DNA from: Lepidodermella squamata
Lineage: Eukaryota > Animalia > Gastrotricha
DNA length: 64,000 nt
NCBI GenBank assembly: GCA_047495785.1
Contig: JBLDXI010000017.1
Location: forward strand, 496,001-560,000
Direction of reading: 5' to 3'
The notes under the pieces are model-generated. The model worked only from the letters and a program-made list of their open reading frames with translations. It searched no databases and was not told where the DNA came from. Shown here piece by piece: positions 8,463 to 58,590 of this stretch (positions are counted from its first letter, which is position 1; the number at the start of each line of letters is the position of its first letter). The position numbers and the translations under genes were made by a program.

Positions 8463-11400
8463 TTACCGAAAGTTGTCTTTTCGATAGAGAACTCTAATGT
8501 AACAGTAGTTTTCTAGGATAGACAGTACAACAAATATCAGCCAGAGGAGGATAAAGAAGGCTCCTGAAAGAACTTTCCACACCTGTGGACCGCCGAATTC
8601 GCCGCGAATAGGCGATACGCGTCGGAATACGAGCACCAGGACAGCGGCGGTAGCGAATACACAGTACAGCATAACACTGAAGCCAGCATTTTCTGGCGGA
8701 ACCTAAAAAAAATTAAATATTTGAGCCGTCCGGTACATTTTAAATAAATTCCCAGTCCCCAAATACGCCTCCACGGTCTCAAATCTGTAGCTTACTGATA
8801 GAGAAGACCCCCTTGCTTGGTTGTAAATTGCTCCAACAGTCCACGCCATGCCGATTCCCAAGAAAACCGAGGCCGCGTTTGAGGTAGTAATGTTACCAAA
8901 GGCTGCATCTGCCGTTTTCTCGTACATAGCTGCATGACGGCCAGCAAATGTATCCGGCAGTCCCATTCCAAAAGCTATGAGTGTAATCCCTGTAATCGTG
9001 TCTTTCAGGCCAACTAAACACCCTAGATACGAAGCACAATCGCCAATCAGCGCTGAGACGAAAGCGACACAGGCGAGCAATGATAAATAGGACACCCAGC
9101 CATGGAGTAGCCGAACAGGCGGGAGTAGAGCTACAAGCAGTTTCCAAGGGAGTGAAATCACATGGATGACATAACGCTTGATAATCCACTTTGATTTCGC
9201 CTTCACGATATTAGCCGAATCGGAATTGCCGTCGCTATCTGGCATTGTATTGGCATTGAAAACGGACGTGGTTTGTTGATGCTCGTCGTGATTAACGACA
9301 AACACGTCTCGAAGCTGATCGAACCAAGTAGAAGCAACCAACAACTCGGCCATATCGGTCATTTTGAGCAGGCGATCGAGAGCGTCACGAACCTCTTCGT
9401 CTTCACATATCCCCAACTGGACAAGCTTGTGTTCGCCCAGAGTAGGTAGGCCTATGCTTGACTTGACGTCATTTGAAAGCTTTTTCGGTTGCGAAAGTTC
9501 GATATAGAACGTGAACATGTCACCGGTTCGATTTTTGTCGATAATTTCAACCTATTGAGTGGGAAATGTACATCATTCATCAACACCGTTCGAAAATTTA
9601 CCTCGAGGAACTGCTCACTTTCGCCATCTTCGAAGTAAAGGACGCCTTTTGGGGAAGGGACGATGTAATCTTCGTGAAGCTTTGCCGTTCCTGGGCTGAT
9701 CTGATACGGGACTGCTACCTTACCTTTAGTGCCAGTGCCTCGAACCACCCGAATCTTGGCGACACCAACGTTATCTGCAATCGCTTGCTCAGTTTTCTCA
9801 AACGTGAAAACGCCGCAGTGGTCGTCGTCCAAAATTGAGACAACCGTCTCTGATAGCGATAATTCAACTTTGGACACTTTCGCGTTATGCTGCGAACCGT
9901 TTGATAGATTTGAACCTAATCGGCGTAAGACAGGTTGCGAACTTCTAACCATTACCGGGTTGGACAACCTCAGGCTAAAGTTTTTGGAGGCTTCTTCATA
10001 AATTCCGTCGTCGAGGATTCGAACGGTAATTTCAGCATTCTGCTGTCCGGGCTCGAAGGTCAGCGAACCTTTAGCAGGCTCGAAATTTATGTCAGCCTTG
10101 GCGGTTCCGGCTACAGTTTCGAAGTCGACAGTTGCTGAAGTTTCGTTGATGCCAGCGCCGTTTCTTATCACAGTAATTGCTGTTTTCTCGCAACTCTCCT
10201 GGCAACTGACGGCTGAAGCTACGAATCCTATGGTTTGCACATCGTATATATTAGAGTGCAGCTTGGTTCTTTGCTCATCCTAATGTAAAAGAAAAGATTA
10301 GCTGGAAAAGCACCTGATGGAATTCATAATCATTTTATGCGAATAGAGAGATTCTATCTATCCTCAAGGTTAACTCAGTGAAAGACTAAAGGTAATGAAA
10401 GTGAACTCAGTGAAAGAGACGAATCGACCCTTATGTCGATTCTCCTTATCCTAACCAGTTCTGCTTTTCTACTTCCCTCTCTGAAATGGTCCCCAAAATA
10501 AATCCCCTGGCTGGAAAGAGGGAATACCCAACTCACATATTTTTCTTTGATGCGCTCACGAGACGGAACATTGGCGCCGCCTGATATCGCTTTTGTAGCT
10601 TGCAATCTGCGGTTAAAATCAAATGGAAGCTAGTCAACTTTCGAACTATTTGCCCTACCTGTAAAACATCGCACTCTTCGGGGTGTCCTCCAACATCTGG
10701 ATTTCAGCCATTTCTGCAGAGATGCAAATAATAATAACAATTTAGCGACATTTCGTTAAGCTCTGAACCTTCTATTTCTAGATGAGACTTTTCTGGATGA
10801 GCCTCCTTCAGATGAGCCAAAATATGCGCCAACCTGCGGCGTTTGTCATCGTCCATATCTTCGCTGAACATACTACTTGAAGACGCGGTATCGCCCCGTT
10901 GCTCACCTTGAGACGTAGCCGGTTCAATTGAGCTGCTCTGAAGGAATTTTCCAACTGACGCCAACCATTTTTGTGGAAAGCGCCTGGCTACGATCCAATC
11001 AGTGACAACCATGATAGGGAAGAACAGTAAAGTCAGCACCGCCTCCCAAACTTCAACAGTACCCGGTGAGATTTCAGCTAGCATTAGGTAGACCCATAGA
11101 TAGGCAAATATTGCATAGATGACTGTTGCGAAGAAAAAATGCCGATCTTTGATGGGTTTTGGCGAAGTTTCTTCGACGCTCAAAAGGCATATAGCAGTGA
11201 TAATGAAGAAATGATAGGCGCCGGAGCCGACTATCAGCGACGGGCCCAGGTCGTCGCTGTCGAAGCCGCCTTTGATGACGCCGAAGACGGGGAGAAATAT
11301 CTCAGGTGCAGATGTTCCGACGGCGGAAACTGTCACTGCTAGAACAGTAGGGTGCCAGACTGGTACCTAAAGGAGCAAATCCGATACGAGTAAAACGAGC

Positions 11401-29908: not shown

Positions 29909-32900
29909 ATGGAACAAACGTGCTTTGAAAATTCTTCTTCAGCGAGGCAATGTTCGGCTGGTATTATCCTACCCTATTGGGCGTATCAGTTCACCTTCAA
30001 AAATATCGCAAATTCCTCGAATTTATCATTAAATTCGGAAATCGAAGCTCCGACTACAACGGACACCTTCGGTCATGGTTTCGCCTATTTCATCGCTTTG
30101 ATTTATTGCCTAATTGGAGCTAATATTGTCGCGAATCGATTAGTGCTAGCTGCCGAGGTGATAACGTCGCAAACTCGTACTTCGACCCTGAAATTGAAAT
30201 CAGGCGGCCTCAGGACGGTTCAAGTACCAATTTGGAACCGAACACTCGCCTTACTGACAATTCAAAGTTTAGCGTGGTGCTCGTTAGAAATTTTACTCCC
30301 AATAATCGAAGTGTCCTTTGATGGCCTTCAGGGTGACCAATTAGGCGCCGCCTTTGTACTGGGCTCGTCTTCATTTCAATTATTTTTCGGCTGTGGTTGC
30401 TATTTACTGCTACCAATTTTCCGGCTAATAGTGGTGAAACGGGTCGAAAATTTCCCATGCTTCGTCACTGCGTTAAGCTTAGGAATTTTGGCCTATTTAT
30501 GGGTCACCCTGTTATTAGGCCAGGTCACCCCGGGCAGTGTGACGATTTGGGGCGCTTTAGTCACCCTGGCTTTTTACCCAATTGTCGTTATTTCGGCGCT
30601 ATTAGGCGGCCGTGGGTTCTTCGATTGGGTCGTTGTAAATATGGTCGAGGAAACAACTCGGCGAAGAGCTAGTGTTGTGATTGATGGCGAGTTGTTGCCG
30701 CATGTTGAGAGTAAGAAGGAGCGCATGAAGCATCGCCGTAATTGGATCAAAGATTCGCGAACTTCGGCACAGCAATTTCGGAGAAAATTGGGCGGCCTGA
30801 TAACAAATATCAGCATGTCCCAGCCTCATCTTACCGATTCTGAAGTTGAAGGTATAAATCGGCTTTAACATAAATAATTGAAAAATAATCTGAATTTAAA
30901 TCTAAATTCCGATAAAATTAAAAATTTAAGAAATTAAATTAAAAGATTAAACAAATAAGGTGGATTTTTCAATAAAATTTCGAATTTTAGAAATTTATTT
31001 GAAATTCCTATTCTTAAGCGAATTTTGCATAATTACTTGGATTTTTGGAAATTTTTTACTTTCAGAGCTCGCCAAGTTTATCATTGACGGAGAATCCGAA
31101 AGATGCTGCTCCCTTTATAGGTGGGTGATTATTGAGATAAATTCTAATTAATTAATCAATTTTTTCAGGCTCGAAGCTATTGGATTTATTTCAGGCGATT
31201 GGGGTGGAAAATATCTGGGCGGAAACTATCAACTCCCGGCCAATCAAATCGCTGTTGGTGAAAATCGCGCCAACTCGATTCCAAAATCCGCGTCGCTGGG
31301 CCTTCAAACAGTCGGCTTTACTAACATATCAGCAAGCTGTTTCGAAAGCTGCTATACCCTAAAGTTATCCGTTGAACGAATCGCAACGGTCGAACAGCTG
31401 ACTACAACAATGGTTCAAGTCATGTATATGACAATAGGAGCTAGTGCTATGGCTGATAACAATTACGTGGCTAGTCGCGGCGTTTTAGTGTTCGATAAGG
31501 GCCAGCATCATGCCGAAATTCGCATACAAATATTGGACGGCGGAAATTGCGACAAAATAGCAACGCATTTTTCAGTATCCCTACTCGCGCCGAGGTTGAT
31601 TTTGCAGTCGAAATTCGTCGATAACGCCAAGGTTTTGAGGAAAGGGGTTGAGATAACTCCGAATCGTAAGATACTACCCATTTCCATCCTCCGCGATAGC
31701 CATAGTGGCGTTTTCATGTTCGAACGTTCCTACATACGAGTCGCGAGTGTTTTGGAGCAAGTTCGCGTTAAGGTGGTTCGAACAGTTGGCGCGCGGTCAT
31801 GCGTGACCTTACCATTCGAAATCAGCCAAAAATCAGCCCGACCTAATTACGACTATCATTTAATTTCGATCGGCCACCGAGGTGTCCTTGAGTTTAAAAA
31901 CGGCCAAATCGAAGCTTATATCGATATCGATATCGTAGACCGCGATCGGCCGCATAATGAAGAGTCGGTGCTATGTATCACCCTGCTACCACCCCTAACT
32001 GACGATCGAGATTCAATGAGCGAAAGCCAACTGTCGATTCCTCGTAATTTTACCGAGCCAACCTTAGGACAGCCTGGTACTTGCGAAATCGCGATTTACG
32101 ATGACGAAATCTTGAAATCAGCAATCGGCCGAGTTAGTGAGGCTAACGATTTCGCGCTTTTTCTACGCACTCATTCGAGTTTTGACGGTCAATTAAAAAA
32201 TTCAATCAATTTTCCTGGATCGAAATTTTACAAATCCTATTCCGAATTGATTCCGCTTCGAATTTTGCATATCGTCACGTTGCCCTGGAAATTAATTACC
32301 GCCTTAACGCCGCCGTTTGAAGTCGGTCACGGTTGGCTGAGTTTTGTGTATTTACTCGGCATTCAAGTACTTCTCGCCATTTTAATCCACGATTTATCGC
32401 TTCATTTCGCATGCTCGATTGGAATTCGAACTTCGATAGTTGCCCTATCAATAATTAGCGTTATTTGGGGGCTACCGCTGGTTGCGACAAATTGCCAGGC
32501 AATATTGAGGGGTGATAAAAAGGCGGCCGATCTCGTTCTCATTCGATTGGCAACGTATAATGTCGTCAATTTGGCGGTTGGGGTCGGTGTTTCATGGACG
32601 ATTGGATCTTTAGTTCAAAAGACACACTACGTCAATGAAAGCATGGTAAGGAATTTTTCAATAATTGCCTATCTAAGCATTTCAAAATTCCTAAAATAAT
32701 CAGGCAACATGAGAGTGCTCTTAGTTAATCTTCGCCGCGGAAAATATGGCCGGAGGAAATTCGTAAAAAAGTAGAAAAATGAAAGTAAAACAATATTTTC
32801 GTCTAATTTGAAAATTAGAATGATCAAGTTTGCGAGTTTAATCAGCCCAACTTTAAAATTTCGAAATTTTGAATTTTGAATATTCCTTGAAATAATCTGA

Positions 32901-34089: not shown

Positions 34090-37000
34090 ATGGATTTTAG
34101 AAACGCAATTTCTGATAAATATTCCAGGAAAATTGCGACTTATGCCAGCTTAATTTTAACCCTAATCGACCTTGCGCTTTCAGCGGAAAAATTCCCGCCT
34201 CGAAATGTGACCTATTTACCGTCTAATCGAACAAACGCGACCTTCAATCCTTTTTCGAAAGAGCCTCAGGATGATGCTGCAGACGACGATAGGTGCTATG
34301 TATCTTCCGAATGTGGTCACGGTCTAATACTACCGCCGTGGTTACCAATTCCGCACAAAGACGATATTGTTACGATTACTTATCACGCTGCTGTTTATGT
34401 CATCGCACTGGCTTATTTGCTATTCGGAGTTTCGATTATTACAGATCGAATCGTATCGGCTATGGAGGTGATAGCGTCGCAAAAACGAACTGTAACAGTG
34501 AGATTAAAATCCGGTGGTACTCGCGTCATCAAGGTAAAAAATCCGGAATTTCAGGAATTGTTAATTTTTTAAGGAGGATTGTTTAATTTTCTAGGGGTGA
34601 TTTTTATAATATAGAGAATATTTGTTCGCGAACAGAAATTAAGGGGGAATTTTTTATAAATTATTCAAATTAACTGTCCCAGATTAATTTTTTCGATCTT
34701 CCTAATATTAGATAAATATATTTCTAATTTATCAGACCCCTATTTGGCATCCCTGCGTTGTATCGTTGACGGTATTCGCAATCGGGACCTCAGCTCCAGA
34801 AATTTTCCTCCCCGTGATGGAAACAATGAAAGCCGGATTTCACGGCGACGAGTTGGGACCATCCCTAATTGTCGGATCAGGTGCCTACAAACTCTTTATA
34901 ATAACCGGTGTTTGCATGATAAGCGTTCATGAAACAACGGCCAAGCCGATTCAAGATCGTTACGTATTTTTTACTACAACACTATTCGCTATATTCGCTT
35001 ATTTATGGATCTACGTTTTGGTCGGCGAAATTTCCCCAGGGGTTATCGAATTATGGGAGGCGTTGTTAACCTTGGCCTTATTTCCGGTTCTTGTACTAAC
35101 GGCGTGGGCGGTTTCGCGCCGATTTCCTCACAAAATTCTGTCGAGAATCGGCAAATTTCTGCATAACAGCATCGCGCCGATTACGTCTGGCCGGAATAGC
35201 GGCTTGGATTCTGCATCGACAACGAGTTCGTTCGACGAACACTTGGACGATGACAAGCGGCGAAAATTGGCGCAATTGCTGGCTCAGTTGAAAGAAGCTC
35301 ACCCTGAGATGACTCAGCTTGAATTAGAAGGTTCGGATATAATAAGCCTGCTGATTTTTTCGATTTTTTCATGATTTTATTTTAGAACTAGCCGAGATTC
35401 AAATGCTGGAAGATACTCCGAAAAATGCTGCTTTTTACCGGTATTTAATTTCAATTTAATTATAATTAAATTTACGATTTTTCTTTAAATAGGCTGCAAG
35501 CCACAAAAGCGATTACTGGAGGTGCTAATGTGATTTCAAAGGAGAAAATTAAGGAGAGGCTCGTAAGTAACTGGATTTTGAGTCGATTCTCGGGTAACGG
35601 ACCAAACCCACGATTTAATTTTAGATTTATTTTAAAGCAAACATGAACATCCATCCGACAGTCTTATAGTGATTTTAGTTAGCGTTGTATGTCAATTTCG
35701 AAAATTAAAAACTAACTTTGAAACCTAATTTAGACGAATGGAACTGAAACCTAAGAAGAGGACATAATTATCGATTTTGTAGGAAAATATCACAAATTAG
35801 CTACATTTTGACGTTACTAAAATGTTAGGGATCGGATTTTAAAAAGTGTGTCCAGGTAGAAAAAGATCAGCTTTTACCATATTATGTGGGAACGTTTCCT
35901 TTGTTTCGGACGAAATTTGAGACAATAAGAGATTTTGAAATCATATTGAATATCCCGTTAGCAAGTCGAGCAATGTCAAAAAACCTAAAATTGACCGATA
36001 TCCCAAAGCTAATGGTTGAATTTTCGTTATAGGAAGAGCAAAAGCGATTAGCAGCTCAAATGTCCGGGCCCTTCACCGAAATTCAAACTATCGGGTTCAC
36101 ATCAGCGGCTGTGAGTTGCCAAGAAAGCTGCGGAACCATGGTGATAAGCGTCGGCCGATGGGGCGCCGGATTAGGCGATACCGTCACCACAATCGAGTAC
36201 GAAACAGTCGCCGGAACTGCTAAACCGAATGCAAATTTCGAACCAGTCAGCGGGCGGCTAGTCATGATACCTGGCCAACAATTCGCGGAAATTCCTATTC
36301 AAATCCTTGACGATGGAATTTACGAGGAAATTTCGAAAGAATTCCGAGTCCGGTTATTCAAACCTGATATGAAACCGGCAAAAACGGATCATTTGCCGCT
36401 TGCTCGGCATAATCCTTCTAGAAACTCGGCGAACATAACTAAGGCGACTAAAATCGAAATGACGATAGGTGAAACTGTAGTTTCAATTCTGGACGACGAT
36501 CATTGCGGGGTTTTTACTTTCGAAAAAGCTGAAATGGCGATTCCTGATAATATTGACATTGCGAAAATTCGAGTCATTCGAGGCACTGGGACAAAGGGTA
36601 AAGTCGGGGTGCCGTATCGAATCAGCCCTGGTACGGCCAAACCGAATCAGGACTACGTTGTGGCGTCTCCGAAGGGTATCCTACATTTCGACGAGGGTCA
36701 AAAAGAGCTGTTTATTGAGGTAAAAAAAATCGAATTTCGCATTTTTCACTTATTAATAGCAATCAAACTACGGGACTTGGGCTCTAATTTGTGGCCACCC
36801 TAATCCGATATATCTAGAAATTACCAAATTTTTTAAATTGAACAGAATTTTTTAAATTGAAATTTCGAAATTATTTGAAATTCGCAAATGAATGAATTTT
36901 TCAAAATTTCGAAATTCAAATTCGAATTTCAAAATTCAAAAAATATAATTTTCCTTAAAAAATTATGAATAATTATGCTGGCTTTTAATTTTTTTTCGAT

Positions 37001-39051: not shown

Positions 39052-42000
39052 ATGGCGGACTTTTTAGAGAACGATTCAATGGGCGCACACGGCCATGGGC
39101 CAAAATCGGGCAATCACGAGACCTGTGAAGTTGATGGCCTAATTATTCCTCGCTGGCTTCCTGATGCCGGCAAATTAGGTGTCCCTACAATAGTAACCCG
39201 GGCCATTATTTACTCCGCAATATTGTGTTATTTACTCTTCGGCCTGGCTATTATAACCGATAGAATCCTGGCAGCGATGGAGGTGATAGCTGGGCAGAAG
39301 AAAACAAAGAAAATTCGGATGAAAAACGGCACAATTCGGCAAATTAAGGTGTGATTCATCGCAAAGAAATTTTTTACAAATTTAAGGCGGAATTTTTATT
39401 TTCAGGCACCAGTCTGGAATTCGACAATAGTCGCCATGACTGTTTTTACCATCGGCTCGTCGGCGCCAGAAATTTTTATTCCTTTGATTGAAATTATCAA
39501 TCACCACTTTCAAGCCCATGACCTTGGCCCTTCTCTCATATTAGGAAGCGGCGCGTTTCACCTTTTTGTCATCACCGGGGTGTGCTTATTCAGCGGGCAT
39601 GAAACCTTCGCAAAACCCATTGTCGATCGTTGGGTTTTCACTGTTCAAGCAATTTGCGCTGTTATAGCTTACCTATGGATTTACGTCATGATTGCCGTTA
39701 TCACGCCTAATGTTATCGAGCTGTGGGAAGCTGTGTTGACTTTGGTATTCTTCCCAACCCAAGTTGCGCTGGTTTATGTGCTATCGAAGCGAAAACGATG
39801 GGTTGAACGCGGCGTTACTCATGTGTTCTGGTGTTGCTTCGAGCAGGTTCGACAGCCTGACGTTAACGAATCAACTAGTCTCATCGCAGATGCGGGATTG
39901 GTTGGGAATCAATCAGGTGCGGAATATGTGATGGCGAGAGATGGCGATGATGAGGATGAAGCGTTAGCTGAACGGGAGGAATCACTCAGGAAGCAATGCG
40001 CGAGTCGGTACCAACAACTGAAAGCTATTCATCCGGAAAAATCAAAGTTGGAACTCGAAGGTGAAACATTAAAATAATTAGATGTGGTCAATGGTTGTCA
40101 ATTATTTTTGAAAAATTATGCACATGAGCGTTCAATTATCCCTACCCGATAATTATCACAGGTTAATTTGTCATATTTCAGGTAAAATTAGAAAAATTCC
40201 CAAATTTTACAGGAAAATTAGGAGTCAACTTTTCAGAAATTGTCCAGTTTGATTTTATGGTATTTATTAGAAATGTTCACATTAGGCATAAATCCAACTC
40301 CGAATTTTGTAATAACTGTTGTAATACTTAAATTTCACCAATTGATGTATAAGATATTTTTATAATTTGTTTCAGAAATGGTCGAAATCGAAATGCTGCG
40401 AGAGACCCCCAAGACAAAGGCATTTTACCGGTACATTTAATTCTGTTTATTTTATTGTTTTTATGTACTCGAGAATGTCATACTCATTCACGCTTGTTTT
40501 TTCCCTAAAAAATGCTGATAATTCAGCTGTATTTTTCAGGCTTCGCGGCACTGGTCATCTCGACACGAACAACAAGGATAAACTACGAAAAAGATATGTA
40601 AGGAAAATGTGAGAAATTACGATGAAAATCTAAGATTTTTCTTTTTTTTTTAACCAGGAAAATGTTGCAGCCACAGATACTTTGGCGCAAAAAGTTGGCT
40701 TTGACTCACCTTTTCACACCTGTAGTGAAGACTGCGACGTAACCAGCGTCAGGGTGACTAGATCTGGCGCAAGTATCAAGCAAACGGAGCTCAGCGTTGA
40801 TTACAAAACAATTAGCGGTAAAAACGCTAAAGCTGGCCGGCATTTTCATGAAAGCATCGGCACGCTAATCATCCCAGCGGGGGAGAAATCGGCTGAGATT
40901 TCTATCAAAATTATTGATGACGATGTTTACGAGACAAGGAAGAAGGCGTTTACAGTCAAATTGACAAATGCGAGGCTTAGATCGACTTCGAATGACTTGG
41001 TTCAGGCTGAAATTCCGATTGAAATGACGTGCGATGAAGTTTCAGTTTCAATTTTGGACGACGATCACGGCGGGGTTTTCTCGTTTGAAAAGTCAGATAT
41101 GGCTGTTCCTGATGATTGTGGAACTGCGAAAATCAAAGTCATTCGCTTGGTTGGAAGTAAAGGTAAAACCTTGCACTAATTAGGACTATTAATGATAGGA
41201 ATTAAGAATTATAGGTAAATAGGAATAGGAATAGGAATAATAGGAATAGGAATCGAAATAGGAATAGGAATAGGAAAAATAGGAAAAATAGGAAAAATAG
41301 GAATACAGTAAAACCTGTTATCTCGAAGGCTCACGGTGCCATTCGACCCCTTCGACTTACAGAGAGATTCGAGATAGAGGGAGACCGATATAAAAGCATG
41401 GAAAATAGCCCCTGGGCCTATTACAACGCGTTTATTTCATCGTCAAAAGGTTTCAGAGCACGAAAATCAACAATTTAATTAATACTGACGCTGGATTTGA
41501 AATACTCGGTGATGCTAGGCTGCCTAAGGCAAGCTGCGCGCTTTTGATGAATTTGATTTTCAATGTTAACGAGAGTATCGCCTAATTGAATGCCAGAATG
41601 ATTGGAATAGCGCTGTAGTATGTCAATAGCCGCCAAAGCTGCCTCGACCGTAGGCGGCTCGAGAACAGGAACGCCGTCTAGTGTCTCTTCAAGCACTTCG
41701 ATCGCCCCAGCGTTTTCCGCGACGCTTTGAGCGGCCTCTTCTTCTCGACGTTCGAGTACGAAACGCGCGACATCATCGACGGTTTGACCTTCGGGCTCGT
41801 AATGAACTGGCAAATCGCGGTCGAAGTCGACGTTTTCAAGATTTAAATCAGCGGAAATCGCGGCCGGTAATTTATCGAGGCCAACTACGAGGCTTGACAG
41901 CGGGATTTCGTCCTCAGCGTCGTATTCCAGCTGACCCGCGGGCGATACGCCGCTTTTCGCAAAACACTTCACGAATGTTTCTTGCCTGACCAAATTCCAC

Positions 42001-44632
42001 GACGCAGTTATCCAATTTACGGCGTCGTAAACGGTGATTGTTTTTGTAAAATCCGACGCCGTCTCGAAGCCGTCGATGCGAGAAACGAGGCGCTGAAGCA
42101 AAAACTTGCGAAAGTGCAATTTAACATTGTAAATGAGGCCTTGGTCGAGCGGCTGGGCTTCACTAGTAGAATTAGGAGGCAAAAACACCAGCTTGACGTT
42201 CGACAATTCGATTTCGACATGGCTTGAACAGTTGTCTAGAAGCAATAAAATTTTGCGGTTTTGTTTGTTCATGGCGCTGTTCAGGTCCTTTAGATATTCT
42301 TCAAAAATAGCCGTCGTCATCCACGCCTTCTTACTGTAACGCCACGTGACCGGAAGATTACGCAAGTCGCGAGCCACGTTGTTTGCTTTAAACGCGCGAG
42401 GATACGCCGCGTGACCTGGAATGAAGTGTTTACACAAGATTATGTAACGCGAGGATTGTTTACCGATTACGAGCGGCTTTAATTTCTCGCCGAGAGCGCT
42501 GCAGGTAAACAACACGCTAACACGCTCCTTAGCCACTTTAACGCCTTTGCATGCGTCATCGCTCAAAACGTAAGACCGAGTCGGAAGTTGACGGAAAAAA
42601 AATCCTTTAAATCATAAAATTTATAAAAGAAATCGTAAAATTGAAAAAAATCAATTACCGGTCTCGTCGCAATTAAAAATATCTTTCATCGCATAGCCGG
42701 CAATTATAGTGGGTAGTTTTAGGAACCATGCCGCGAGCGATTCTTTCGGCAACTCCGCCGATTCACCGCTTAGTTCTTTCAATGAAATCCCTTCGCGATC
42801 AAGCCAGCTGCGAAGCCAGCCGTTACTCGCCGCGAAATTGGCATATCCCAGGGCATCAGCAAAGAATTTCGCTTTTGTTTGCAAAATGGGACCGTCTAGA
42901 GCAATGTTCTTGCTTCGACAAAGCACTAGGAACGCCAGAAGCATAGAATTAATGACTCCAAATTTACACTCTCGCAGCGAGCGCGATCGGCATTTGGTGT
43001 CATCGACTTTGCCTTCTTTATTAACAGCGAGTGAACTCAAGTAGAGAGCTTGTAATTTTTCGCGATCTTTCTTGATCTTAGAAACGGTAGACGGCGCGAT
43101 ATTGAACTCGGCGGCTATTTTAGGATAGGGAGTTTTCGCATCGATAAGCTCCAAAACCTTCATTTTATCTTGAAGATTTAATTCCGGCATCGTAAAACAA
43201 AAATTGTGAATGAAATTACTCTAGAATTTAGCGAAGAAATTTTAGGAATTAGCTTTGAAAATTCGACTTCGCAGAGTCAAAACAATGGGCCATATGGCTA
43301 CCGTTCCTTTCCCGCCCTTCGACTTTCGAGATAGACAGAGTTCGACTTCACAGAGTAAATATTATGTGTCACATGCTGAAAAACCCACGGTTCCTCGCCA
43401 CGCGTTCGACATACACGAGTTTTCGAGATACACAGAGTTCGAGATAACAGGTTTTACTGTAATAGGAAAAATAGGAATAGGAATTGAATTAGGAATGGGA
43501 ATAGGAATTAGGAATAGGAATAGGTTTATCGATTGAGCATTTAACAGTTTTCCAATATTTTAAGGAAACGTATCGATTCCTTACCACGTCAACTCTGGAA
43601 CGGCTCAAATCGATAACGACTTTATACCGATTGGCGGAGCCCGAAACGAGTTGAAATTCGAAAAAGGCGTCTACGAGAAGACAATCGAGGTCCAAGTTAT
43701 TGACAAGAATCGCTGCGGCACCATTCAGACCTTCTTCATCGAGTTATTCGACCCTTTAGTCCTCGATCACCACGCGTCATCTCAAGTTGCTCACCCTACC
43801 CTGGGCGATAACCGGCTGATTCAAATCGGAATTTGTGAAAATGAAGAAGTTAAAGAGGCTATGGATCGGCTGGTGAAGATGACAAGTCTATCCGAATACG
43901 TCATCACCGAATCTTGGTCGGATCAAATTAAGGAGGCGTGTTCGGTTACCTTTCACTGCGAACACCCTAGTCCATTCGAAAAATTTCGCGGTTACGCATT
44001 TTTTGTCCTGTCATTCCCTTGGAATTTCCTCGTCGCCCTTCTGCCACCCACTCGAATGATCCATGGCTGGGCGACCTATTTGTCCTTACTAGGCCTTGTA
44101 GCCTTAGTAGCTGCCTTAATAGGAGATATAGCCATCCATCTAGGGTGCACGGTCAAATTGAAAGATTCAGTCATGGCTATTACCCTAATCGCGTTTGGTA
44201 TGGGCCTTCCGGACACTTTTGCCAGTCGACATGCGGCTATGCATGAAAAAACAGCGGATGAAGCTATCGGGCATATTACCAGGGCTAATACCGGATCGGT
44301 TTTTCTCGGTATGGGCCTAGCCTGGACTGTTGGTGCAGCTTATCAAAAGGCTCACGGTCATAAACTCGAGGTAAAACGTGAAAATTATTCTGTATATTAT
44401 TTCTTTCCTGATTTTGCTCTAGATAAAAACTGATCATCTTGATTTCAATGTGATAATGTACTGTGTGCTGGCGAGTTTCGCCATCATTGTACTATTTATC
44501 AGGCGTTTACCTCCGATTCGAGGCGAATTAGGCGGACCGACTTGGTCGAAGGTTATATCTGGAATGTTCTTCCTCGGTCTCTGGGTTGTTTTTGTTGTCA
44601 TGGGAACACTAGAAGCTTACAATTTACTTTGA
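39052..44632 (+). CDS. NCX/SLC8-like paralogue E; multi-exon; intron 41163-43564 carries a Tigger element
   Basis: IGSSAPE...GSGAFH; IIDDDVYE/ILDDDHGG; GMGLPDTF...AIGHITRANTGS. Splicing AAAG|gt...taag|GAAAC restores GSKGNVSIPY. Confidence 0.92.
41190..41303. repeat. Degenerate (ATAGGA)n satellite, continuing at 43462-43524
   Basis: The same repeat flanks both sides of the Tigger insertion. Confidence 0.85.
41306..43459 (-). mobile_element. pogo/Tigger DNA transposon, apparently full length
   Basis: Perfect 22-bp TIR CAGTAAAACCTGTTATCTCGAA, TA TSD at 41304-41305 and 43460-43461. Confidence 0.95.
41475..43190 (-). CDS. pogo/Tigger transposase (HTH_psq + CENP-B HTH + DDE_1), spliced
   Basis: Exons 43190-42659, 42604-42464, 42415-41475. 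Triad FNCDETG / LLLDNCSSH / QPLDQG (DD29D); C-terminal PIP-box-like QPSITEYF. Confidence 0.9.
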
Positions 44633-45893: not shown

Positions 45894-46457
45894 TTAATTG
45901 TATTGTGTTCAATGATTCCACTTCAGCAGAAATAACTTGAAATAAATTAACAGCACAAGAGTTGAAGTTCATCCTCAAAATTATGATCATTGTCTTTACA
46001 GGTATATATAAAAGCAATATCTAAATAAAATGGCATGAAAAGGCCTTTGCTGTATTCATTCTTATCTTCTTACCGGTTATCAAAATTCTGATAACATAAT
46101 AAAAGTTACCGTTAGAAAGCGCGGCAGGACGTTGCCTGACTACATATTTGGATAGACCGGAGGATGATTAGTATTCACTTTTCTGCCATGGTAATCTATT
46201 TTGCAAAATGAATATAACACACCCCCGCACATACTAACCGTCATGTTATCACCAGCGACAAATTTTCTTTTAGAAACAATAATTTTTTCGTTGAAAGCCA
46301 TATAGCACAAGTTATCAAGAAGCCGTCGCGCGCTTCTTATCATCGTAACCAACGGCAAGAGACATTTAATGCTGATATTGTCTGACGTTCACCTACATAG
46401 AAGAATTAGTTTATATCGCGCCTCGTAAATTTGGGAAAATTGTCTAACTGCTTGGAG

Positions 46458-49400
46458 ATGACATCCCCCTACTCGTTTGGATCAATAGCCGAGTTCACGG
46501 ACGTTGAGTCTTTGTTGCGTTCCGAGAACCTCCTTAGAAACGCATACACATGTAGAAGCAATGACTGTTACCCTTACAACTTCGTCATTAAAAAGGCTGA
46601 TCTGACCAAGCTGCACAAGGAATTCGAGCAAGACTTCGAAACAATTACCCGACTTCTTCGCGAAAAAGTAAGAAATCTTCGTGGAAACGGAGTTGATTAG
46701 ATACCATTGGGTATTATAACTTGTTTTCAGGATTTGAAAATGCTAAAAATTAACCACGTAAACATTGTTCGAGTATTTGGCATGTTTGAAGGTTCGCTTG
46801 AAGGGCACTCACGTAAATTTTATACCAAACATGTCTTTGGAAGAATATCTTGACAACCACTCGATGCGCCATCTAGTGATGGAGTTTTGTGGGGGCGGCA
46901 GTTTCAAAACTCTGATCGACGCTAGGGGCGATCCGATTCGCGAAGTTAGGCTTCGAAGTTGGTCTGGCCAGCTTGTTTCAGCTTTGCATTATCTACACAA
47001 TCAAGACATACTCCATCGTAACATAAAGCCGAGCAATATTCTGCTATCGAAATATCAAGGCACTGTGAAACTGGCTGAGCTAGGGATAATCGAAGCCTTT
47101 GACACGTAAAGCCTTCAGTTTACACTTCAAAATTAATCATTAATTTCAACCGTAATTTTCAAGAAATTCAAAAATGAATACTCTCTTTCAATTGATGTGG
47201 AGCTATTTGCCTCCTGAGGTATGGAACGGTGCGCCTATGTCACGTGCAAGTGACGTCTGGGCGTTGGGATTCACGCTTTACGAAGTCGCGAACTACAGGA
47301 GACCAGTATGACATGGACTTAACATTGGCATTTGAAAATGATTCATTTTGTTTAGTTCGAACCACAGCACACTATGATGACGTGAGTCAGATTAACTTTC
47401 TCATACTCCTTTCTATGCTTGCAAGGTCCAGTCTTAAATTGTTAAATAATGTCGAACATTCTCTGTTTAGAAAAGAAGCTCGGGCGTTCAACGAGTCTCT
47501 TGATTATTCAACAGATTTCCAGGAATTTGTAATGTCGATGCTAACAAAGAACGATGAGGCTCGGCCGAGAACTGATCAGCTGGAAAGACACAACTTTCTA
47601 CTGAACCCTCCAGCCAAAGAGGCTATGAAGGTGAGGTTAATATCCAGATCAGGATGAGTGACGACGTTCAGTAATACTGTATACGTACTAATTTTCGCGG
47701 TAATCTTGAATTCGCGAATTGCCCAAAAATGACCATTTTCTATTTTCGCGAAATTTTAAATTCGCGAGGGCGATCCTTGGATAATTGCGTAATAAAACAG
47801 TAATTTTCGCGAAAATCTTGAATTCGCGAGGATACGGCGATCTCGGTTAAAGTTATGTGCCTTTCGCGTAACAACTACAGTTCGCGCATGGCGATTACGT
47901 TGCGCGCGTGCGCTCTATTCCGGCCCGCTGATTGGTTACCAATCAGGACTTGGCTCGCGCGCACTTGTACTAAGTATTCCTCACAAGCGCGCGCATCAGT
48001 TCACTTTTCTTAGTCCTGATTTTTAACAAATTCTAGACCGCGCGCGCGGATTTCAAAGAATTACTTTCAAACATCGCGTCGGTTTTCATACTACAAAATA
48101 ATTCGAACAATTCGCTATCGAATATATATAGGGTTCTCGCGTGAAAAATTCATGGAAATAAGTTTTACGCGCACCTCAAAATTTGCGCACAGGATGAGAG
48201 CGCGCTCTCTCGTCTGAGAACGAAATTGAAGTCGCGCGTAAGATTTTCCCATTATTCTTTTCGCGAGAAACCTATATCCATTCGATAGAGAATTGTTTGA
48301 ATTTTATCAGAGTATAAAAACCGCCAAAATAATCAGAAATATCTTTCTGTCAATAGCGCGCGCGGTCCAGAAATGATCATTTGAGCTTGTGTTTTCGCAA
48401 AAATCCACATTTACCCTCTGATTGCGCAATCTAAGGAGGGCCCGTAATTCTCGTAACTCGTGCGCATGTCGTTCCGGTTATGCGAGCAATAGCGGCTGGT
48501 TGCGAAATTGATAGCTGTGTAGAGAAGCGGAAAGTGCGAAGGCGCGCTTAATCGACTACTCGATCTACAATGGCAACTAATTACGCGCGCGGCTCGATTG
48601 ATAACCACTTGATGGACAATCGACCACCAGTTAAGCGGCAGTGATTTGATTGGCTTAGTCGTCTCAGCCAATCAGCGGCTACCACTTTTAGCTCAAGCAG
48701 TTTGTCACGCTGCTAGGAAATGAGCATTAAATGACCAACTAGTCTCGCAGGTGCCTGGTGCCCAAGACCGCTTTTCAAATCGTTTAGAATTACGCAATCT
48801 CTGCGAGCGATTTTCTTTCACGAGGGATTTTTTTTCGCGTGCAATTAATTTTCACGAGGGATAAATTTTCGCGAATCTTGAATTCGCGAGCCGAGGTCGT
48901 CGCGAAATTTCGCGAAAATAAAATTACAGCGAAAATTTGTACGTATACAGTATTGATCATTCAAATTATCAGGGCTTATTTGACTGTGTATGGATGAAGA
49001 AAGATGCGTTCAAATTAGTGGATCTACTGTCGAACAAAGAGCTTGATCTGAGCCCCGACAGCAAAGACGACGAAGGGTTTCCATTACTGTACCTTGCTGC
49101 TCAGAAAGGCTACAAAGATATAGTGGAGATCCTGGCGAAGCAATTCCAGGCCAATGTTGAGGCGGCCGATAACAATGGCGCTACGCCATTGTACGTCGCT
49201 GCCGCGAATGGCCGCGTCGATGTGGTGAAGACACTGGCTGCCGATTTCAACGCCAATGTCGAGGCAGCCGAGAAAGATGGCGCTACGCCATTGCACATCG
49301 CTGCCCAGAATGGTCCCGTCGATGTGGTGAAGACATTGGCTGGGGATTTCAACGCCAATGTCGAGGCAGCCACTAACGATGGCAGGACGCCATTGCACAT

Positions 49401-51828
49401 CGCTGCCCAGAATGGTCCCGTCGATGTGGTGAAGACATTGGCTGGGGATTTCAACGCCAATGTCGAGGCAGCCACTAACGATGGCAGTACGCCATTGCAC
49501 ATCGCCGCCCGGGATGGCCACGTCGATGTGGTGAAGACACTGGCTGGGGATTTCAACGCCAATGTCGAGGCAGCCACTAACGATGGCAGTACGCCATTGC
49601 ACATCGCCGCCTGGAAAGGCCACGTCGAGGTGGTGAAGACCCTGGCTGGGGATTTCAACGCCAATGTCGAGGCAGCCGAGAAAGATGGCGCTACGCCATT
49701 ACACATCGCCGCCCGGGATGGCCACGTCGATGTGGTGAAGACATTGGCTGGGGATTTCAACGCCAATGTCGAGGCAGCCACTAACGATGGCTACACGCCA
49801 TTGCACATCGCCGCCCGGGATGGCCACGTCGATGTGGTGAAGACACTGGCTGGGGATTTCAAAGCCAATGTCGAGGCCGCCACTAACGATGGCTACACGC
49901 CATTGCACATCGCCGCCCGGGAAGGCCACGTCGATGTGGTGAAGACACTGGCTGGGGATTTCAAAGCCAATGTCGAGGCAACCCAGAAAGATGGCGCTAC
50001 GCCCTTACACATCGCCGCCTGGAAAGGCCACGTCGAGGTGGTGAAGACCCTGGCTGGGGATTTCAATGCCAATGTCGAGGCAGCCGAGAAAGATGGCGCT
50101 ACGCCATTACACATCGCCGCCCGGGATGGCCACGTCGATGTGGTGAAGACATTGGCTGGGGATTTCAACGCCAATGTCGAGGCAGCCACTAACGATGGCT
50201 ACACGCCATTGCACATCGCCGCCCGGGATGGCCACGTCGAGGTGGTGAAGACCCTGGCTGGGGATTTCAACGCCAATGTCGAGGCAGCCACTAACGATGG
50301 CTACACGCCATTGCACATCGCCGCCCGGGATGGCCACGTCGATGTGGTGAAGACACTGGCTGGGGATTTCGACGCCAATGTCGAGGCAGCCACTAACGAT
50401 GGCTACACGCCATTGCACATCGCCGCCCGGGATGGCCACGTCGATGTGGTGAAGACACTGGCTGGGGATTTCAAAGCCAATGTCGAGGCAACCCAGAAAG
50501 ATGGCGCTACGCCCTTACACATCGCCGCCTGGAAAGGCCACGTCGAGGTGGTGAAGACCCTGGCTGGGGATTTCAACGCCAATGTCGAGGCAGCCGAGAA
50601 AGATGGCGCTACGCCATTGCACATCGCTGCCCAGAATGGTCCCGTCGATGTGGTGAAGACATTGGCTGGGGATTTCAACGCCAATGTCGAGGCAGCCACT
50701 AACGATGGCTACACGCCATTGCACATCGCCGCCCGGGATGGCCACGTCGATGTGGTGAAGACACTGGCTGGGGATTTCAAAGCCAATGTCGAGGCAACCC
50801 GGAAAGATGGCGCTACGCCCTTACACATCGCCGCCTGGAAAGGCCACGTCGAGGTGGTGAAGACACTGGCTGGGGATTTCAAAGCCAATGTCGAGGCAAC
50901 TCAGAAAGATGGCGCTACGCCCTTACACATCGCCGCCTGGAAAGGCCACGTCGAGGTGGTGAAGACCCTGGCTGGGGATTTCAACGCCAATGTCGAGGCA
51001 GCCACTAACGATGGCAGTACGCCATTGCACATCGCCGCCCGGGATGGCCACGTCGATGTGGTGAAGACACTGGCTGGGGATTTCAAAGCCAATGTCGAGG
51101 CAACCCGGAAAGATGGCGCTACGCCCTTACACATCGCCGCCTGGAAAGGCCACGTCGAGGTGGTGAAGACCCTGGCTGGGGATTTCAACGCCAATGTCGA
51201 GGCAGCCGAGAAAGATGGCGCTACGCCATTACACATCGCTGCCCAGAATGGTCCCGTCGATGTGGTGAAGACATTGGCTGGGGATTTCAACGCCAATGTC
51301 GAGGCAGCCACTAACGATGGCAGGACGCCATTGCACATCGCTGCCCAGAATGGTCCCGTCGATTTGGTGAAGACATTGGCTGGGGATTTCAACGCCAATG
51401 TCGAGGCCGCCACTAACGATGGCTACACGCCATTGCACATCGCCGCCCGGGATGGCCACGTCGAGGTGGTGAAGACACTGGCTCGCGATTTCAACGCGAA
51501 TGTCGAGGCAGCCACTAACGATGGCAGTACGCCATTGCACATCGCCGCCCGGGATGGCCACGTCGAGGTGGTGAAGACACTGGCTCGCGATTTCAAAGCC
51601 AATGTCGATGAAGTTAAAAAAGACGGTTGGACCCCGTTAATGTGCGCTGCATATCGCGGCCAATACGCGGTTGTCGATTTACTGATAAATGAACTTCGAG
51701 CAGAAGTCAGCCCCGTTGATAATGATGGACATACCGCTCTCTATTTAGCCAATAACTGCTATGATAATGTTGCACCTGATAACAAACGTAAAACAATTGA
51801 AAACCTCAAAAAAGCGAATGATAGATAA
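46458..51828 (+). CDS. NEK-like pseudokinase fused by splicing to a 27-repeat ankyrin array
   Basis: Kinase exons from 46458 to 47630 (FVIKK, NHVNIV, MEFCGGG, LHRNIKPSNILL, KLAELG, YLPPE, SDVWALG). Phase-0 donor at 47631 and phase-0 acceptor ending at 48972 join it in frame to the ankyrin exon 48973-51828. Confidence 0.8.
47677..48950. mobile_element. Non-autonomous TA-targeting DNA transposon in the kinase-ankyrin intron
   Basis: TIR CTGTATACGTAC(t/a)AATTTTCGC(g/t)GTAAT, TA TSD at 47675-47676 and 48951-48952, TTCGCGA subterminal repeats. Confidence 0.85.
49177..51624 (+). repeat. 24 near-identical 102-bp (34-aa) coding tandem repeats (ankyrin)
   Basis: Unit GxTPLHIAAxxGHV(D/E)VVKTLAGDF(N/K)ANVEAxxxD, counted from the translation. 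Confidence 0.97.
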
Positions 51829-52533
51829 TTAATTTCAGAAATTTAGAAATTGTGCGTATAATTTCATATTAACGTCCAAGAGCGAAGTCTACTGAAGTTT
51901 TTACTTTAAAATCGGCGAGATACTTCATGCTTTTCTCAAACTATCTTTCACTAGGGCAATAAAAAAACAGCTGCTCTAAATTGTTCATTTTCCTAAAACA
52001 GCAAATCAGCCGTGCTATGGGCCTATACGAAGCTCTCGGCTATTGATTTTCAACAATGAGATATGCAATAATAGCAATAATAGCAAAATGCAATAAAACC
52101 AGACCCGACCCGGGCATGGGGCGTATAAGGCTTGTGACTGATACCACAATGATTGATGAGTTGTGTGTTGTGTCAACCATGAACTATATAGGTATCATAT
52201 TTCAGCCAATCTTATCGCATAACCGAGTAAGAAATGAATTACGCCGACAATACAGTGAATGCGACAAAACGGCAACTTTATCGCGACAATACAGCAAAAA
52301 CTGGCTATGTAAAAGATGCATTGTGTTCCTGCTTGTATGTCGCAAGTTGAAAAATTTGCTGTTATGTCGCGTTTGCTGTTTTGGTTATTTGCTGTTATGA
52401 CGGTCTGCCCTAGCTCCTCTGAATTCTGTATATTCGAAATTTCTTTCAATCACTGTGAACTACTTAAAATCCTCGATTCCTGAGAGACAACCGTGGCAAT
52501 CGGTGCAGACCACAGATTGCTAATACCTCTCCC

Positions 52534-54967: not shown

Positions 54968-57900
54968 ATGCTACAGCCATCCAACCACTCAAACTGCCAT
55001 TCTGGTCTGTTGATACCCAAAAGATGGTTCCGAACCGATTTGCCACTGTTGGATCCATCGAATGTGAAACAAGTCGCAGTTATCGTCGTCCTTCTACTTT
55101 ACCTATTGTACGGCGTTTCTTTCATTACCGAACGAATAATTCTAGCTATGGAGGTGATTTCTACTCAAAAGCGGGCTAAAACCGTCAAATTAATGACTGG
55201 AGTAACGAAAACAATTAAGGTGAGACGATTGACCTAGTTTCAGACAATTTTAAAGAATTTTTAAAGGTACCATTTTGGAACCCATTAGTGATCTCTCTAA
55301 CGGCGTTTACCATCGGAACCCCCGAGACATTTCTACCTCTGATCGAGGTGGTTAACCGAGGTTTCGAGGCCCATCACCTCGGCCCTTCGTTGATCGTTGG
55401 AAGCGCTGCTTTTCACCTGTTCGCAATAATCGGGGTCTGCCTGTTAAGTGGCGACGAAACTTGCCCCAAACCTATCAGGGACCGAGCTGTTTTCACCACC
55501 CAAACAGCTTGTTCCATTTTGGCCTATTTCTGGATTTGGGTTGTCATCGATCTAATTTCACCTGGTGTTGTCGAGTTATGGGAGGCGATTTTCACGCTCT
55601 GTTTGTTTCCATGCTTGGTTCTAATTATCTGGAGCGTGTCGAAGAGCTACCCTCAGCGGTTTTTGGCGCGAATTAGGCGAAGATACCGCGGTGGAAGCGA
55701 CGAAGAAAATGCCCTACTTCTGCCGCCAGCTGATTATGAAGATCATATGAAAATCGATAGCATAGCTGGGAATAGTAGTAGCTTTTACTACCTGAGTCGA
55801 ACTCGAAAAGGCCGGGAATTTGCTAGTTTGGTCGAAAAATTGAAGTCGACTCATCCGGAAAAATCTCGAGCTGAATTGGAAGGTAACACAATTTAGCTCG
55901 ATTTACCGTAAAAACCGAATTTGGGTCCTAGTTCTATAATAGTGCCTCGCCTGGTATAAACCCCCAGTCTGAGCGATGATTGAACTAATAATATCTCAGG
56001 CCTAAATTAGTATCTTGGTTTCTTAATACATTTTTTTGCACTTGTCACATGACTGAAAATTACTAATTGCATTTCCGAATCCGATTTAACAAACATTCAA
56101 TTAAAATGATGCGAAGCTCAACTCTGATCTGGTGAGTATAAATGCCTGTTAGCTGAGATGAATTGTCATCATTTCCCGTCAGAAAAATTCCCCGGTGTTG
56201 TTGATAGCTAAGGGAGATGCGAAGGGGATTGAAGAAACATGAAAACAATCACTACGAAGAGGACATTTAACTGTTGTTTCATTTTAGACGCTTTTCCAAA
56301 TTAATTTTTCATCTCATGAAGATAGATTCAAATAAATAATACCACAGCCTACAATTGTACCTCGCCTGCAATAAACCCTCACTTTTCTCTTGGTTTGAAA
56401 CTATAAAAACACGGCACCCAATTTCGGTTTTTACGGTAATTCAATTTTTAATCAAAATTATTTAGAAATGGCTGAGGTCAAAATTCTGGCTGGAATTCCT
56501 CGAAATGCTACATTTTACAGGTAAATTTTATCTTCAATAATTTTCAAGTTTTTAAAAATTGGATCGATATTCGGGAATTGAGTGTTATTTTGAACTTTGA
56601 ATTTAAAATTTAAAATTTAATAAAATTTGAAATTTCAACTTTTTAAATTCAATTTTTCAGAATTTTTGGTCATATTCGGGATTGCCATGTTCCTCTGATT
56701 TCAACTCAAAAAGTTGGTTTCGTACTGGCCTATCACACCTGTTCAGAAGATTGCGGCCAAGTTACCATCAGAGTCGGCCGATGGGGCCCAGAAATCGCTT
56801 CAACCACCCTATTTGTCAACTACGAAACAGTCGAAGGCGAAAACGCCAAGCCATTCATCCACTACGAACCTACTGTTGGAACTATTACATTCCAACCAGG
56901 GCAGAAATTCGCCGAAATTTGCGTTACAATCATCGACGATAATGTCTACGACCCTCGGGAGCGCATTTTCAGCATTAGGTTGAAGCACCCGAGCCTTCAA
57001 ACCCACAGTCGGGTGAAACGAGTTGAAGTCACCCTGGGCGATGCTGTTATATCGATTCTGGACAACGACCACGCTGGCGTCTTCTCATTCGAAGATTCCT
57101 ATCTCAGCCTTGAAAGTTTCAGTGATCGAGCGAGAATTAAGGTGGCTCGTCATTTAGGCGCAAGGGGTTCCATCTCGGTACCGTATCGAATCAACAAAGG
57201 AACCGCCTTAATTGACAATATCCGAGGCGATTTGACCTTCAAAACTGGCCAATTAGAAAGCTACATCGACGTTGAAATTCCCGAAAAATCTGCCGAAGAT
57301 TCCGATGTTGTTCGAATGTTTTTCATCGAGCTTCTGGAACCTGAATATTTACCCGAGGATGACGACTCAGAAGATTTAAGCTCCGTGGCGAAACCTGTTT
57401 TAGGGTCGAATAAATTGGTTCAGATAGCGTTGTTGGCACCGGGCCAAGTTGCGGATTTTGCCGCTGAATTATCAGATTTTTTGCTGGTCGAAAGCTGGCT
57501 GGATCAATTTCGCGATCTAGTCACCCTACCTGATCGCAGCAACCGTTCAAAGCCGGTTTTTATCACCTGGATTTTCCTGATAATTTCATGGCCGTGGCAA
57601 TTTATTCTGGCCATCATACCGCCTGTTTGCTTTTTCAGCGGCTGGATCGCTTACATTTTGCTAATCTGCTTGATGGGTGTTACAACTGCCCTAATTGGTG
57701 ATTTAACGTCATTCCTAGGGTGCCTAGTCGGCCTACAGGATATTGTGACTGCGGTCACCCTGATCGCGATAGGGGCTGGCCTGCCGGATTTGCTAGCAAG
57801 TCGGCATGCGACTATTCATGAGAAATTCGCCGATTCAGCTATTGGCCATATTACCAGTTCGAATACCGGGTCGGTTTTTCTCGGTATCGGACTGGCTTGG

Positions 57901-58590
57901 ACAGTTGGAGCGGCTTATCAAGCTGCTCATGGCAGACACCTGGAGGTAAAAATTGAGAAATAATCAATTTTTTGTGCGTATTTTATCAGAACATTTCAAG
58001 AGTAATTTTTGAGAATGTCTCAATTTTTGAGAATTTCAATTTTTCAATTTTAAAATAATTGGTAAAGGAAGTCCTAAATTTGGGGATCCAGCACTGAATT
58101 ATGAGCCGATATCGATTTTGAGAATCAATTTAGCAAATCAGTGATTTTTCCAATATCGACATTGAATATTTTCTGGATAAAATTAAATAATTAAATTAAA
58201 TTAAAAACCCATGATTTAGGGTGCGTAGTTAGAATAGGATAGGGAATTTTGGCAATTAGCAAAGCTATATTGAATGCAAATTTATAATATTTGCGATAAA
58301 TTTAAATTTTAATCGTTAGATCCATAAGTCCGATGTCCGATGTCCGATGTAAATTTGCAATTTTTTTCATTTTTTAGATGCCGTCCGCGGAAAGTTTTGC
58401 ATTTTTCGTGCTCACCTATTGCATTATGGCCGTGATTGGCGTTTCAATTCTACTACTACGGCGATGCGCACCGATCAACGGCGAACTCGGCGGGCCTCGA
58501 TGGGCTAAAATTTTATCGGCCACGTGCTTTCTAGGCCTCTGGTCCGGCTTCGTTGTTCTATCAACACTGAACGCCTACTCTCTGCTCTGA
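54968..58590 (+). CDS. NCX/SLC8-like paralogue F; multi-exon
   Basis: FTIGTPETFLP...GSAAFH; IIDDNVYD/ILDNDHAG; GAGLPDLL...AIGHITSSNTGS; RRCAPINGELGG. Confidence 0.9.
55906..56436. mobile_element. TA-flanked MITE in NCX-F intron
   Basis: TA-CCGTAAAAACCGAA...TTCGGTTTTTACGG-TA. Confidence 0.8.

Follow-up and report, generated by a model that had tools for sequence, protein, structure and literature searches.

A pseudokinase-ankyrin gene of the gastrotrich Lepidodermella squamata with a homogeneous, recombining repeat array that varies mainly at its likely binding-face positions

Overview

The gene described here lies at positions 46458-51828, on the plus strand, of a 64,000-nucleotide stretch of the gastrotrich Lepidodermella squamata (assembly GCA_047495785.1, contig JBLDXI010000017.1, positions 496,001 to 560,000 of the forward strand); in the following, this whole stretch is called the window. 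It comprises seven exons in one open frame, and its predicted protein of 1,238 amino acids joins a degenerate, NEK-like kinase domain of 287 amino acids to a single exon carrying 27 ankyrin repeats. The gene is real and its exons are spliced; we consider it probable that it is expressed and that its product serves for binding, in the manner of a scaffold or adaptor without catalytic activity, with a dead kinase domain and a reshuffled ankyrin groove. To our knowledge, the combination of a kinase-ankyrin fusion with an internally conserved and reshuffled array is undescribed in animals, each of the two being known separately.

Gene model and transcription

The joined frame of the script-built gene model has 3,717 nt, equal to 1,238 codons, with no internal stops. 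All six introns are of the GT..AG type, five of them being 50-89 nt long and the last one 1,342 nt. Exon 1 (46458-46667) starts at an ATG and encodes 70 amino acids of a degenerate N-lobe, exon 2 (46731-46791) the alpha-C or 'HVNIV' segment, exon 3 (46844-47105) the kinase core, and exon 4 (47164-47305) the activation segment, from 'SYLPPE', which replaces APE, to 'DVWALG'. The boundaries of exon 2, which a 52-nt GT..AG intron separates from exon 3, were set by reading frame and splice signals alone, its joint being absent among those listed for the read run X2 described below. Exon 5 (47356-47381) is a micro-exon of 26 nt. Exon 6 (47471-47630) ends the kinase C-lobe and closes on a whole codon at 47630, so that the junction across intron 6 (47631-48972) to exon 7 at 48973 is in phase 0. 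Finally, exon 7 (48973-51828) encodes 951 amino acids and the stop, arranged as a short helical linker, an N-terminal cap, 25 units, a C-terminal cap and a short tail; the large open reading frame that contains it, 48937-51828, codes for 963 amino acids. The transcript would be expected to extend to a putative poly(A) site near 51960. A preliminary description of this DNA, made from its letters, had proposed that the kinase exons are open and that splicing joins them, in phase 0, to a single exon carrying 27 ankyrin repeats. Both the gene model and the anchoring of the repeats on their TPL motif agree with this.

Evidence on transcription came from two read runs aligned to 46300-49250, namely X1, which is DNA-like, and X2, which is probably RNA; the RNA nature of X2 is a guess, and its organism is coded differently. 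The depth of X2 was 30-140 over the exons versus 0.15-16 across the 1.3-kb intron, and the depth of X1 over this last intron was in the hundreds to thousands. Contigs of X2 were found on exon 1 (46459-46659), exon 3 (46877-46953 and 46995-47108), exon 4 (47188-47305) and exon 6 (47466-47628). Exons 5 and 6 are connected by the joint 47381>47471, of the GT..AG type. The joint between the kinase and the ankyrin exon appeared in two contigs as 47628>48971; shifting the cut by two places to the right gives exactly 47630/48973, again GT..AG, and the junction that the preliminary description had singled out for checking was thus seen in this probable RNA run.

Between exons 4 and 6, the X2 contigs also carry diverged versions of the micro-exon, the contigs of paralogues having 25-36 diverged letters in the interval from 47297/47305 to 47470/47473. 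Therefore, at least three expressed paralogues share this exon plan. Altogether, the kinase-ankyrin fusion is transcribed in this gene family, and very probably it is transcribed from the present copy as well.

As a separate observation, one X2 contig with its start at the ATG (in the region of 46440-46459) has about 25 extra letters unlike the window, placed right after an AG. These could be a trans-spliced leader or reflect the divergence of a paralogue.

The kinase domain

The kinase domain is predicted to be inactive because its glycine-rich loop, its catalytic Asp and its Mg-binding Asp have been lost. HRN stands in place of HRD at 47014-47022 (cat-cgt-aac, residues 148-150) and ELG in place of DFG at 47077-47085 (residues 169-171), and a GxGxxG loop is absent from exon 1. 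The preliminary description had reported the same three losses and the same predicted inactivity, and HRN was found where it had placed it. Exon 3 is still readily recognized as a kinase by the Pfam Pkinase family (69.4 bits, E-value 4.2e-19, curated cut-off of 31.7). Exon 1 gave no kinase match in Pfam or, using phmmer, among PDB sequences, and 'VIKK' at 46584-46595 could, judging from the letters, be a remnant of the VAIK motif.

Protein-database searches of the kinase were carried out with single exons as queries. In the case of the PDB, NEK1 was the top single-domain match for exon 3 (45 bits) as well as for exon 4 (E-value 1.1e-3), with STE20, MAP3K5 and ULK kinases scoring almost equally; no RIP kinase occurred among the 60 best matches of exon 3. 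A search through all of 1.84 billion representatives found no close relative of an 86-amino-acid kinase exon, the best match having 49% identity, and its top ranks were taken by multi-kinase proteins with additive scores. Ankyrin repeats were found in none of the 10 matches of this exon that were scanned with Pfam, and in one of the 150 matches listed (P0109). The protein atlas likewise returned generic kinase fragments only. For the present copy we also considered a tandem layout of a live kinase next to the pseudokinase. This was rejected, as tblastn with the spliced kinase as query showed one kinase-like domain and no second kinase piece in the window.

Structure and predicted fold of the ankyrin array

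The array is highly regular. Tandem Repeats Finder reported a 102-nt period at 49150-51608 with 24.1 copies, 90% matches and 0% indels, and anchoring on TPL gave 25 units spaced exactly 34 amino acids apart (49147-51696), which together with both caps make up the 27 repeats. Exon 7 matched the Pfam Ank family with an E-value of 7.7e-212 in 25 stretches. Pkinase and Ank were the only families in the Pfam scan of the exons, which showed no NOD, NACHT, NB-ARC, TIR, death, HET or other signalling domain. A word search with the N-terminal part of the array protein (residues 1-100, i.e. linker, cap and first unit) found no orthologue, the matches being generic ankyrin proteins of at most 48% identity.

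The homogeneous core is formed by units 2-24 (49249-51594), which belong to a few recombining subtypes. Mean identity within this core is 89% in DNA (78-100%) and 85.0% in protein, with 48% of the unit pairs reaching 85% protein identity. The array is homogeneous, but the near-identity in DNA that the preliminary description gave for repeats 2-25 was overstated. Eighteen distinct units can be told apart in DNA and 14 in protein, and several identical units are not adjacent to each other (7=12=16, 4=19, 9=14 and 2=15). The longest exact internal repeat is 173 nt, a length easily spanned by long reads. A higher-order repeat was considered and dismissed, the exact matches being scattered at offsets of 1-19 units with none longer than 173 nt.

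The array is predicted to fold as a canonical ankyrin solenoid. Folding of the ankyrin part with AlphaFold2 (AF2) and an alignment of 20 rows gave paired helices every 34 residues in all five models, with a predicted local distance difference test score (pLDDT) of 94.7. A Foldseek search with the AF2 model ranked ankyrin-1 and designed ankyrin repeat proteins (DARPins) among the top matches, along with ankyrin-B (5y4d; TMq of 0.90, root-mean-square deviation of 2.3 Å); the structure prediction that the preliminary description had suggested as a check is consistent with its ankyrin assignment. When the protein of 48973-50064 was folded by AF2 without an alignment, an all-beta solenoid resulted (pLDDT 77, pTM 0.82), which we discarded as a single-sequence artefact given the aligned run. 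Single-sequence folds of repeat proteins consequently need caution, since here near-perfect ankyrin repeats were misfolded with moderate confidence.

Variation, selection and recombination among the units

The DARPin module of Binz et al. (2003) is reportedly randomised at positions 2, 3, 5, 13, 14 and 33, and the array unit was mapped onto this module by these positions. A related library paper places the randomised positions in the beta-turn and in helix 1 (PMC4308713). In the array, five of the six DARPin positions vary, compared with 6 of the 28 others (Fisher p=0.008), and 57% of the amino-acid diversity falls on the six positions (permutation p=0.0005). The concentration of variation at these sites, as proposed in the preliminary description, is borne out by both tests, and its list of 24 residue pairs following the TPLHIAA motif was matched exactly.

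The same six codons, chosen a priori, stand apart in their substitution pattern. The pairwise ratio of non-synonymous to synonymous substitution rates (dN/dS) was 2.0 at these codons versus 0.29 elsewhere, at a dS of about 0.17-0.18 in both. Counted as minimum changes, the proportion of replacement to silent changes was 16.5:2.5 on the face and 6:10 elsewhere (p=0.002). These two contrasts show that the framework of the array is under purifying selection and that the face, i.e. the tip of the beta-hairpin and the end of the inner helix, changes fast.

The variation is organised in linked blocks and not as free positions, and codons 1, 23, 25 and 32 of the unit vary too. In the case of the residue pair, QN, RD and WK are common and RE occurs once. 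Every QN comes with Pro at +2 and with two synonymous markers, GCT and GGT (a QN-G-P subtype). WK is linked to Glu at +4, in a subtype with the silent markers CCC, TTA and ACC. Blocks of the hairpin and of the helix are found in mixed combinations, and all four gametes are present at 43 of the 153 informative site pairs. The pattern therefore fits unequal recombination or conversion inside the units, in line with the repeat shuffling that had been proposed earlier.

The preliminary description had further suggested a code of residue pairs like that of transcription activator-like effectors (TALEs). With TALE repeats the array shares a 34-amino-acid unit and an adjacent residue pair that varies between otherwise similar units. 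Unlike TALE repeats, the units match Pfam Ank and take the ankyrin fold in AF2, the pair is linked to its neighbours and has three common states, and there is no sign of DNA binding. A TALE-like code is thus not supported.

Comparison with known systems

The closest described architecture is the Nek-ankyrin expansion of Giardia lamblia. Its Nek and Protein 21.1 families include mostly inactive Nek domains that precede 1-26 ankyrin repeats (Manning et al. 2011, PMC3218828), an association that its authors saw in no other species. The Giardia family is large and fast-evolving, and its repeats belong to a TALM subclass that is divergent in sequence (PMC3218828). Common to both are an N-terminal, mostly dead Nek-like domain placed before ankyrin repeats and the lack of a signal peptide or membrane segment. 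In contrast to Giardia, all core units here read TPLH and not TALM, the repeats have 34 amino acids and are about 85% mutually identical, the gene belongs to an animal, and its assignment to NEK is weak.

In evolutionary mode, the closest system is that of fungal NOD-like receptors (NLRs) with internally conserved ankyrin repeats. NLRs of the HET-E type carry internally conserved ANK, TPR or WD repeats, defined as being 85% or more identical along a stretch of 100 or more amino acids (Dyrka et al. 2014, PMC4986451). In the case of ANK, the sites that vary are on the concave face, and the number of repeats is polymorphic; in animals, internally conserved repeats are rare, at 0.8% of repeats (PMC4986451). 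The present array resembles these receptors in its reshuffled repeats of 33-34 amino acids, whose high internal conservation is borderline by that definition, and in having its variable sites on the inner helix and the beta-hairpin, i.e. on the concave face. It differs in that the gene lacks a NACHT or NB-ARC domain as well as an N-terminal effector of the fungal type, carries a dead kinase instead, and belongs to an animal.

Canonical ankyrins share the predicted fold, and the array has about the size of the 24-repeat membrane-binding domain of AnkB and AnkR, whereas the gene lacks their spectrin-binding and death domains. Resemblance to DARPins lies in the match of the variable positions to five of the six that are randomised in libraries; unlike these libraries, the natural array derives from a few recombining subtypes and not from free randomisation. 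From both, it differs in its unit of 34 and not 33 amino acids, the extra residue being in the loop after helix 2. The vertebrate proteins RIPK4 and ANKK1 have kinases of the RIP type, whose catalytic motifs are intact, and about 10-11 divergent repeats. They have in common with the present protein that they are soluble and place an N-terminal kinase before C-terminal ankyrin repeats. Here, however, the kinase is dead, no RIP kinase stands among the 60 best PDB matches of exon 3, and the array is long and homogeneous.

Proposed function and alternative explanations

As a binding scaffold or adaptor, the protein could work as follows. Unequal recombination or gene conversion between a few unit subtypes expands and reshuffles the array. 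The canonical ankyrin binding groove, formed by the tip of the beta-hairpin together with the end of the inner helix, would capture protein ligands. The dead kinase domain could be a module for docking or allosteric control, with active kinases from the same expanded family as plausible partners. Several points weigh against this reading. The listed contig across the kinase-ankyrin junction shows about 4% divergence from the window (7 of 163 letters), and therefore it possibly stems from a paralogue or another strain and not from the present copy; an ankyrin-only product may also start from an in-frame ATG at 48994. The NEK-like assignment of the kinase domain, made from sequence matches, is weak. 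Regarding selection, the excess of dN/dS over 1 at the face, taken by itself, falls short of significance (binomial p=0.08), and relaxed constraint on surface positions would yield an equal enrichment. Lastly, the sequence of the array is known from the assembly alone.

This last point, together with the lost kinase motifs, the unrecognisable exon 1 and the transposon in the last intron, would suit a decaying or neutral young duplicate or a repeat assembly artefact, whose array pattern was inherited from older subtypes without selection. We regard such an origin as highly improbable, as the 1,238-codon frame is open over seven exons with intact splice signals, the framework has a dN/dS of 0.29 at a dS of 0.17, spliced transcripts of the family exist, and no exact internal repeat exceeds the 173 nt mentioned above. 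A living gene could alternatively encode a scaffold for cytoskeletal or ciliary localisation, similar to the Nek and Protein 21.1 families of Giardia, with the variation of the array being a product of birth and death within the family. The Giardia family has the same architecture and similar dynamics (PMC3218828), and NEK1 is the top PDB match of two exons. Still, the repeats are of another subclass (TPLH and not TALM), the NEK assignment carries little weight, and a scaffold with a fixed partner does not predict an excess of replacements on the groove; by this analogy, a localisation scaffold appears distinctly unlikely.

It is this excess on the binding face, along with the recombination of the units, that would be expected of a variable intracellular receptor for non-self, acting in innate immunity or allorecognition, in which the groove senses variable ligands of pathogens or conspecifics and the pseudokinase either transmits the signal or is a decoy. 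The models for such a receptor are the fungal NLRs with internally conserved repeats and the tandem kinase-pseudokinase resistance proteins of plants. The internal conservation of the array comes close to the 85% that defines such repeats in fungal NLRs (PMC4986451), and close paralogues or alleles are present in X1 and X2. However, the Pfam scan revealed no known immune signalling domain, the dN/dS above 1 lacks significance, and the gene stands as a single copy amid the NCX genes of the window and not in a receptor cluster. We thus consider a receptor role, drawn by analogy, to be rather unlikely, and the scaffold or adaptor is preferred. A wider version, in which a germline-encoded animal family of intracellular variable receptors combines a dead, or a tandem live-and-dead, NEK-like kinase with a recombining ankyrin array, is speculative and seems doubtful to us. 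If it were true, animals would have a counterpart of their own to fungal NLRs and plant tandem-kinase resistance proteins, one without NOD or leucine-rich repeats. Should the family recognise variable targets, it would add a new type to the recognition molecules of animals and be nature's analogue of DARPin libraries.

The inserted element and the neighbourhood of the gene

Most of the last intron is taken up by an inserted element, about 1.28 kb long and bearing terminal inverted repeats whose arms (47673-47718 and 48909-48954) are 87% complementary. The element is highly repeated in the DNA-like run X1 and has a depth near zero in X2. Copies of the gene without this insert are present in X1, as indicated by the joints 47657>48958 and 47661>48951.

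The window has a GC content of about 41%; this composition, the short introns and the neighbouring NCX-type genes are indicative of an animal genome. At least six pieces of NCX-type exchangers (Na_Ca_ex plus Calx-beta) are distributed over both strands, at 881-2587, 8703-10237, 29909-32696, 36060-36800, 43651-44430 and 56980-57960, and the pseudokinase-ankyrin gene stands alone between two of them. In the protein atlas, a neighbouring gene matched animal NCX clusters. An open reading frame of 363 amino acids on the minus strand (41475-42563) encodes a transposase domain of the DDE_1 family (pogo/Tigger type, E-value 7.5e-38). A perfect (TTTCC) microsatellite with 75 copies was additionally observed at 5524-5899.

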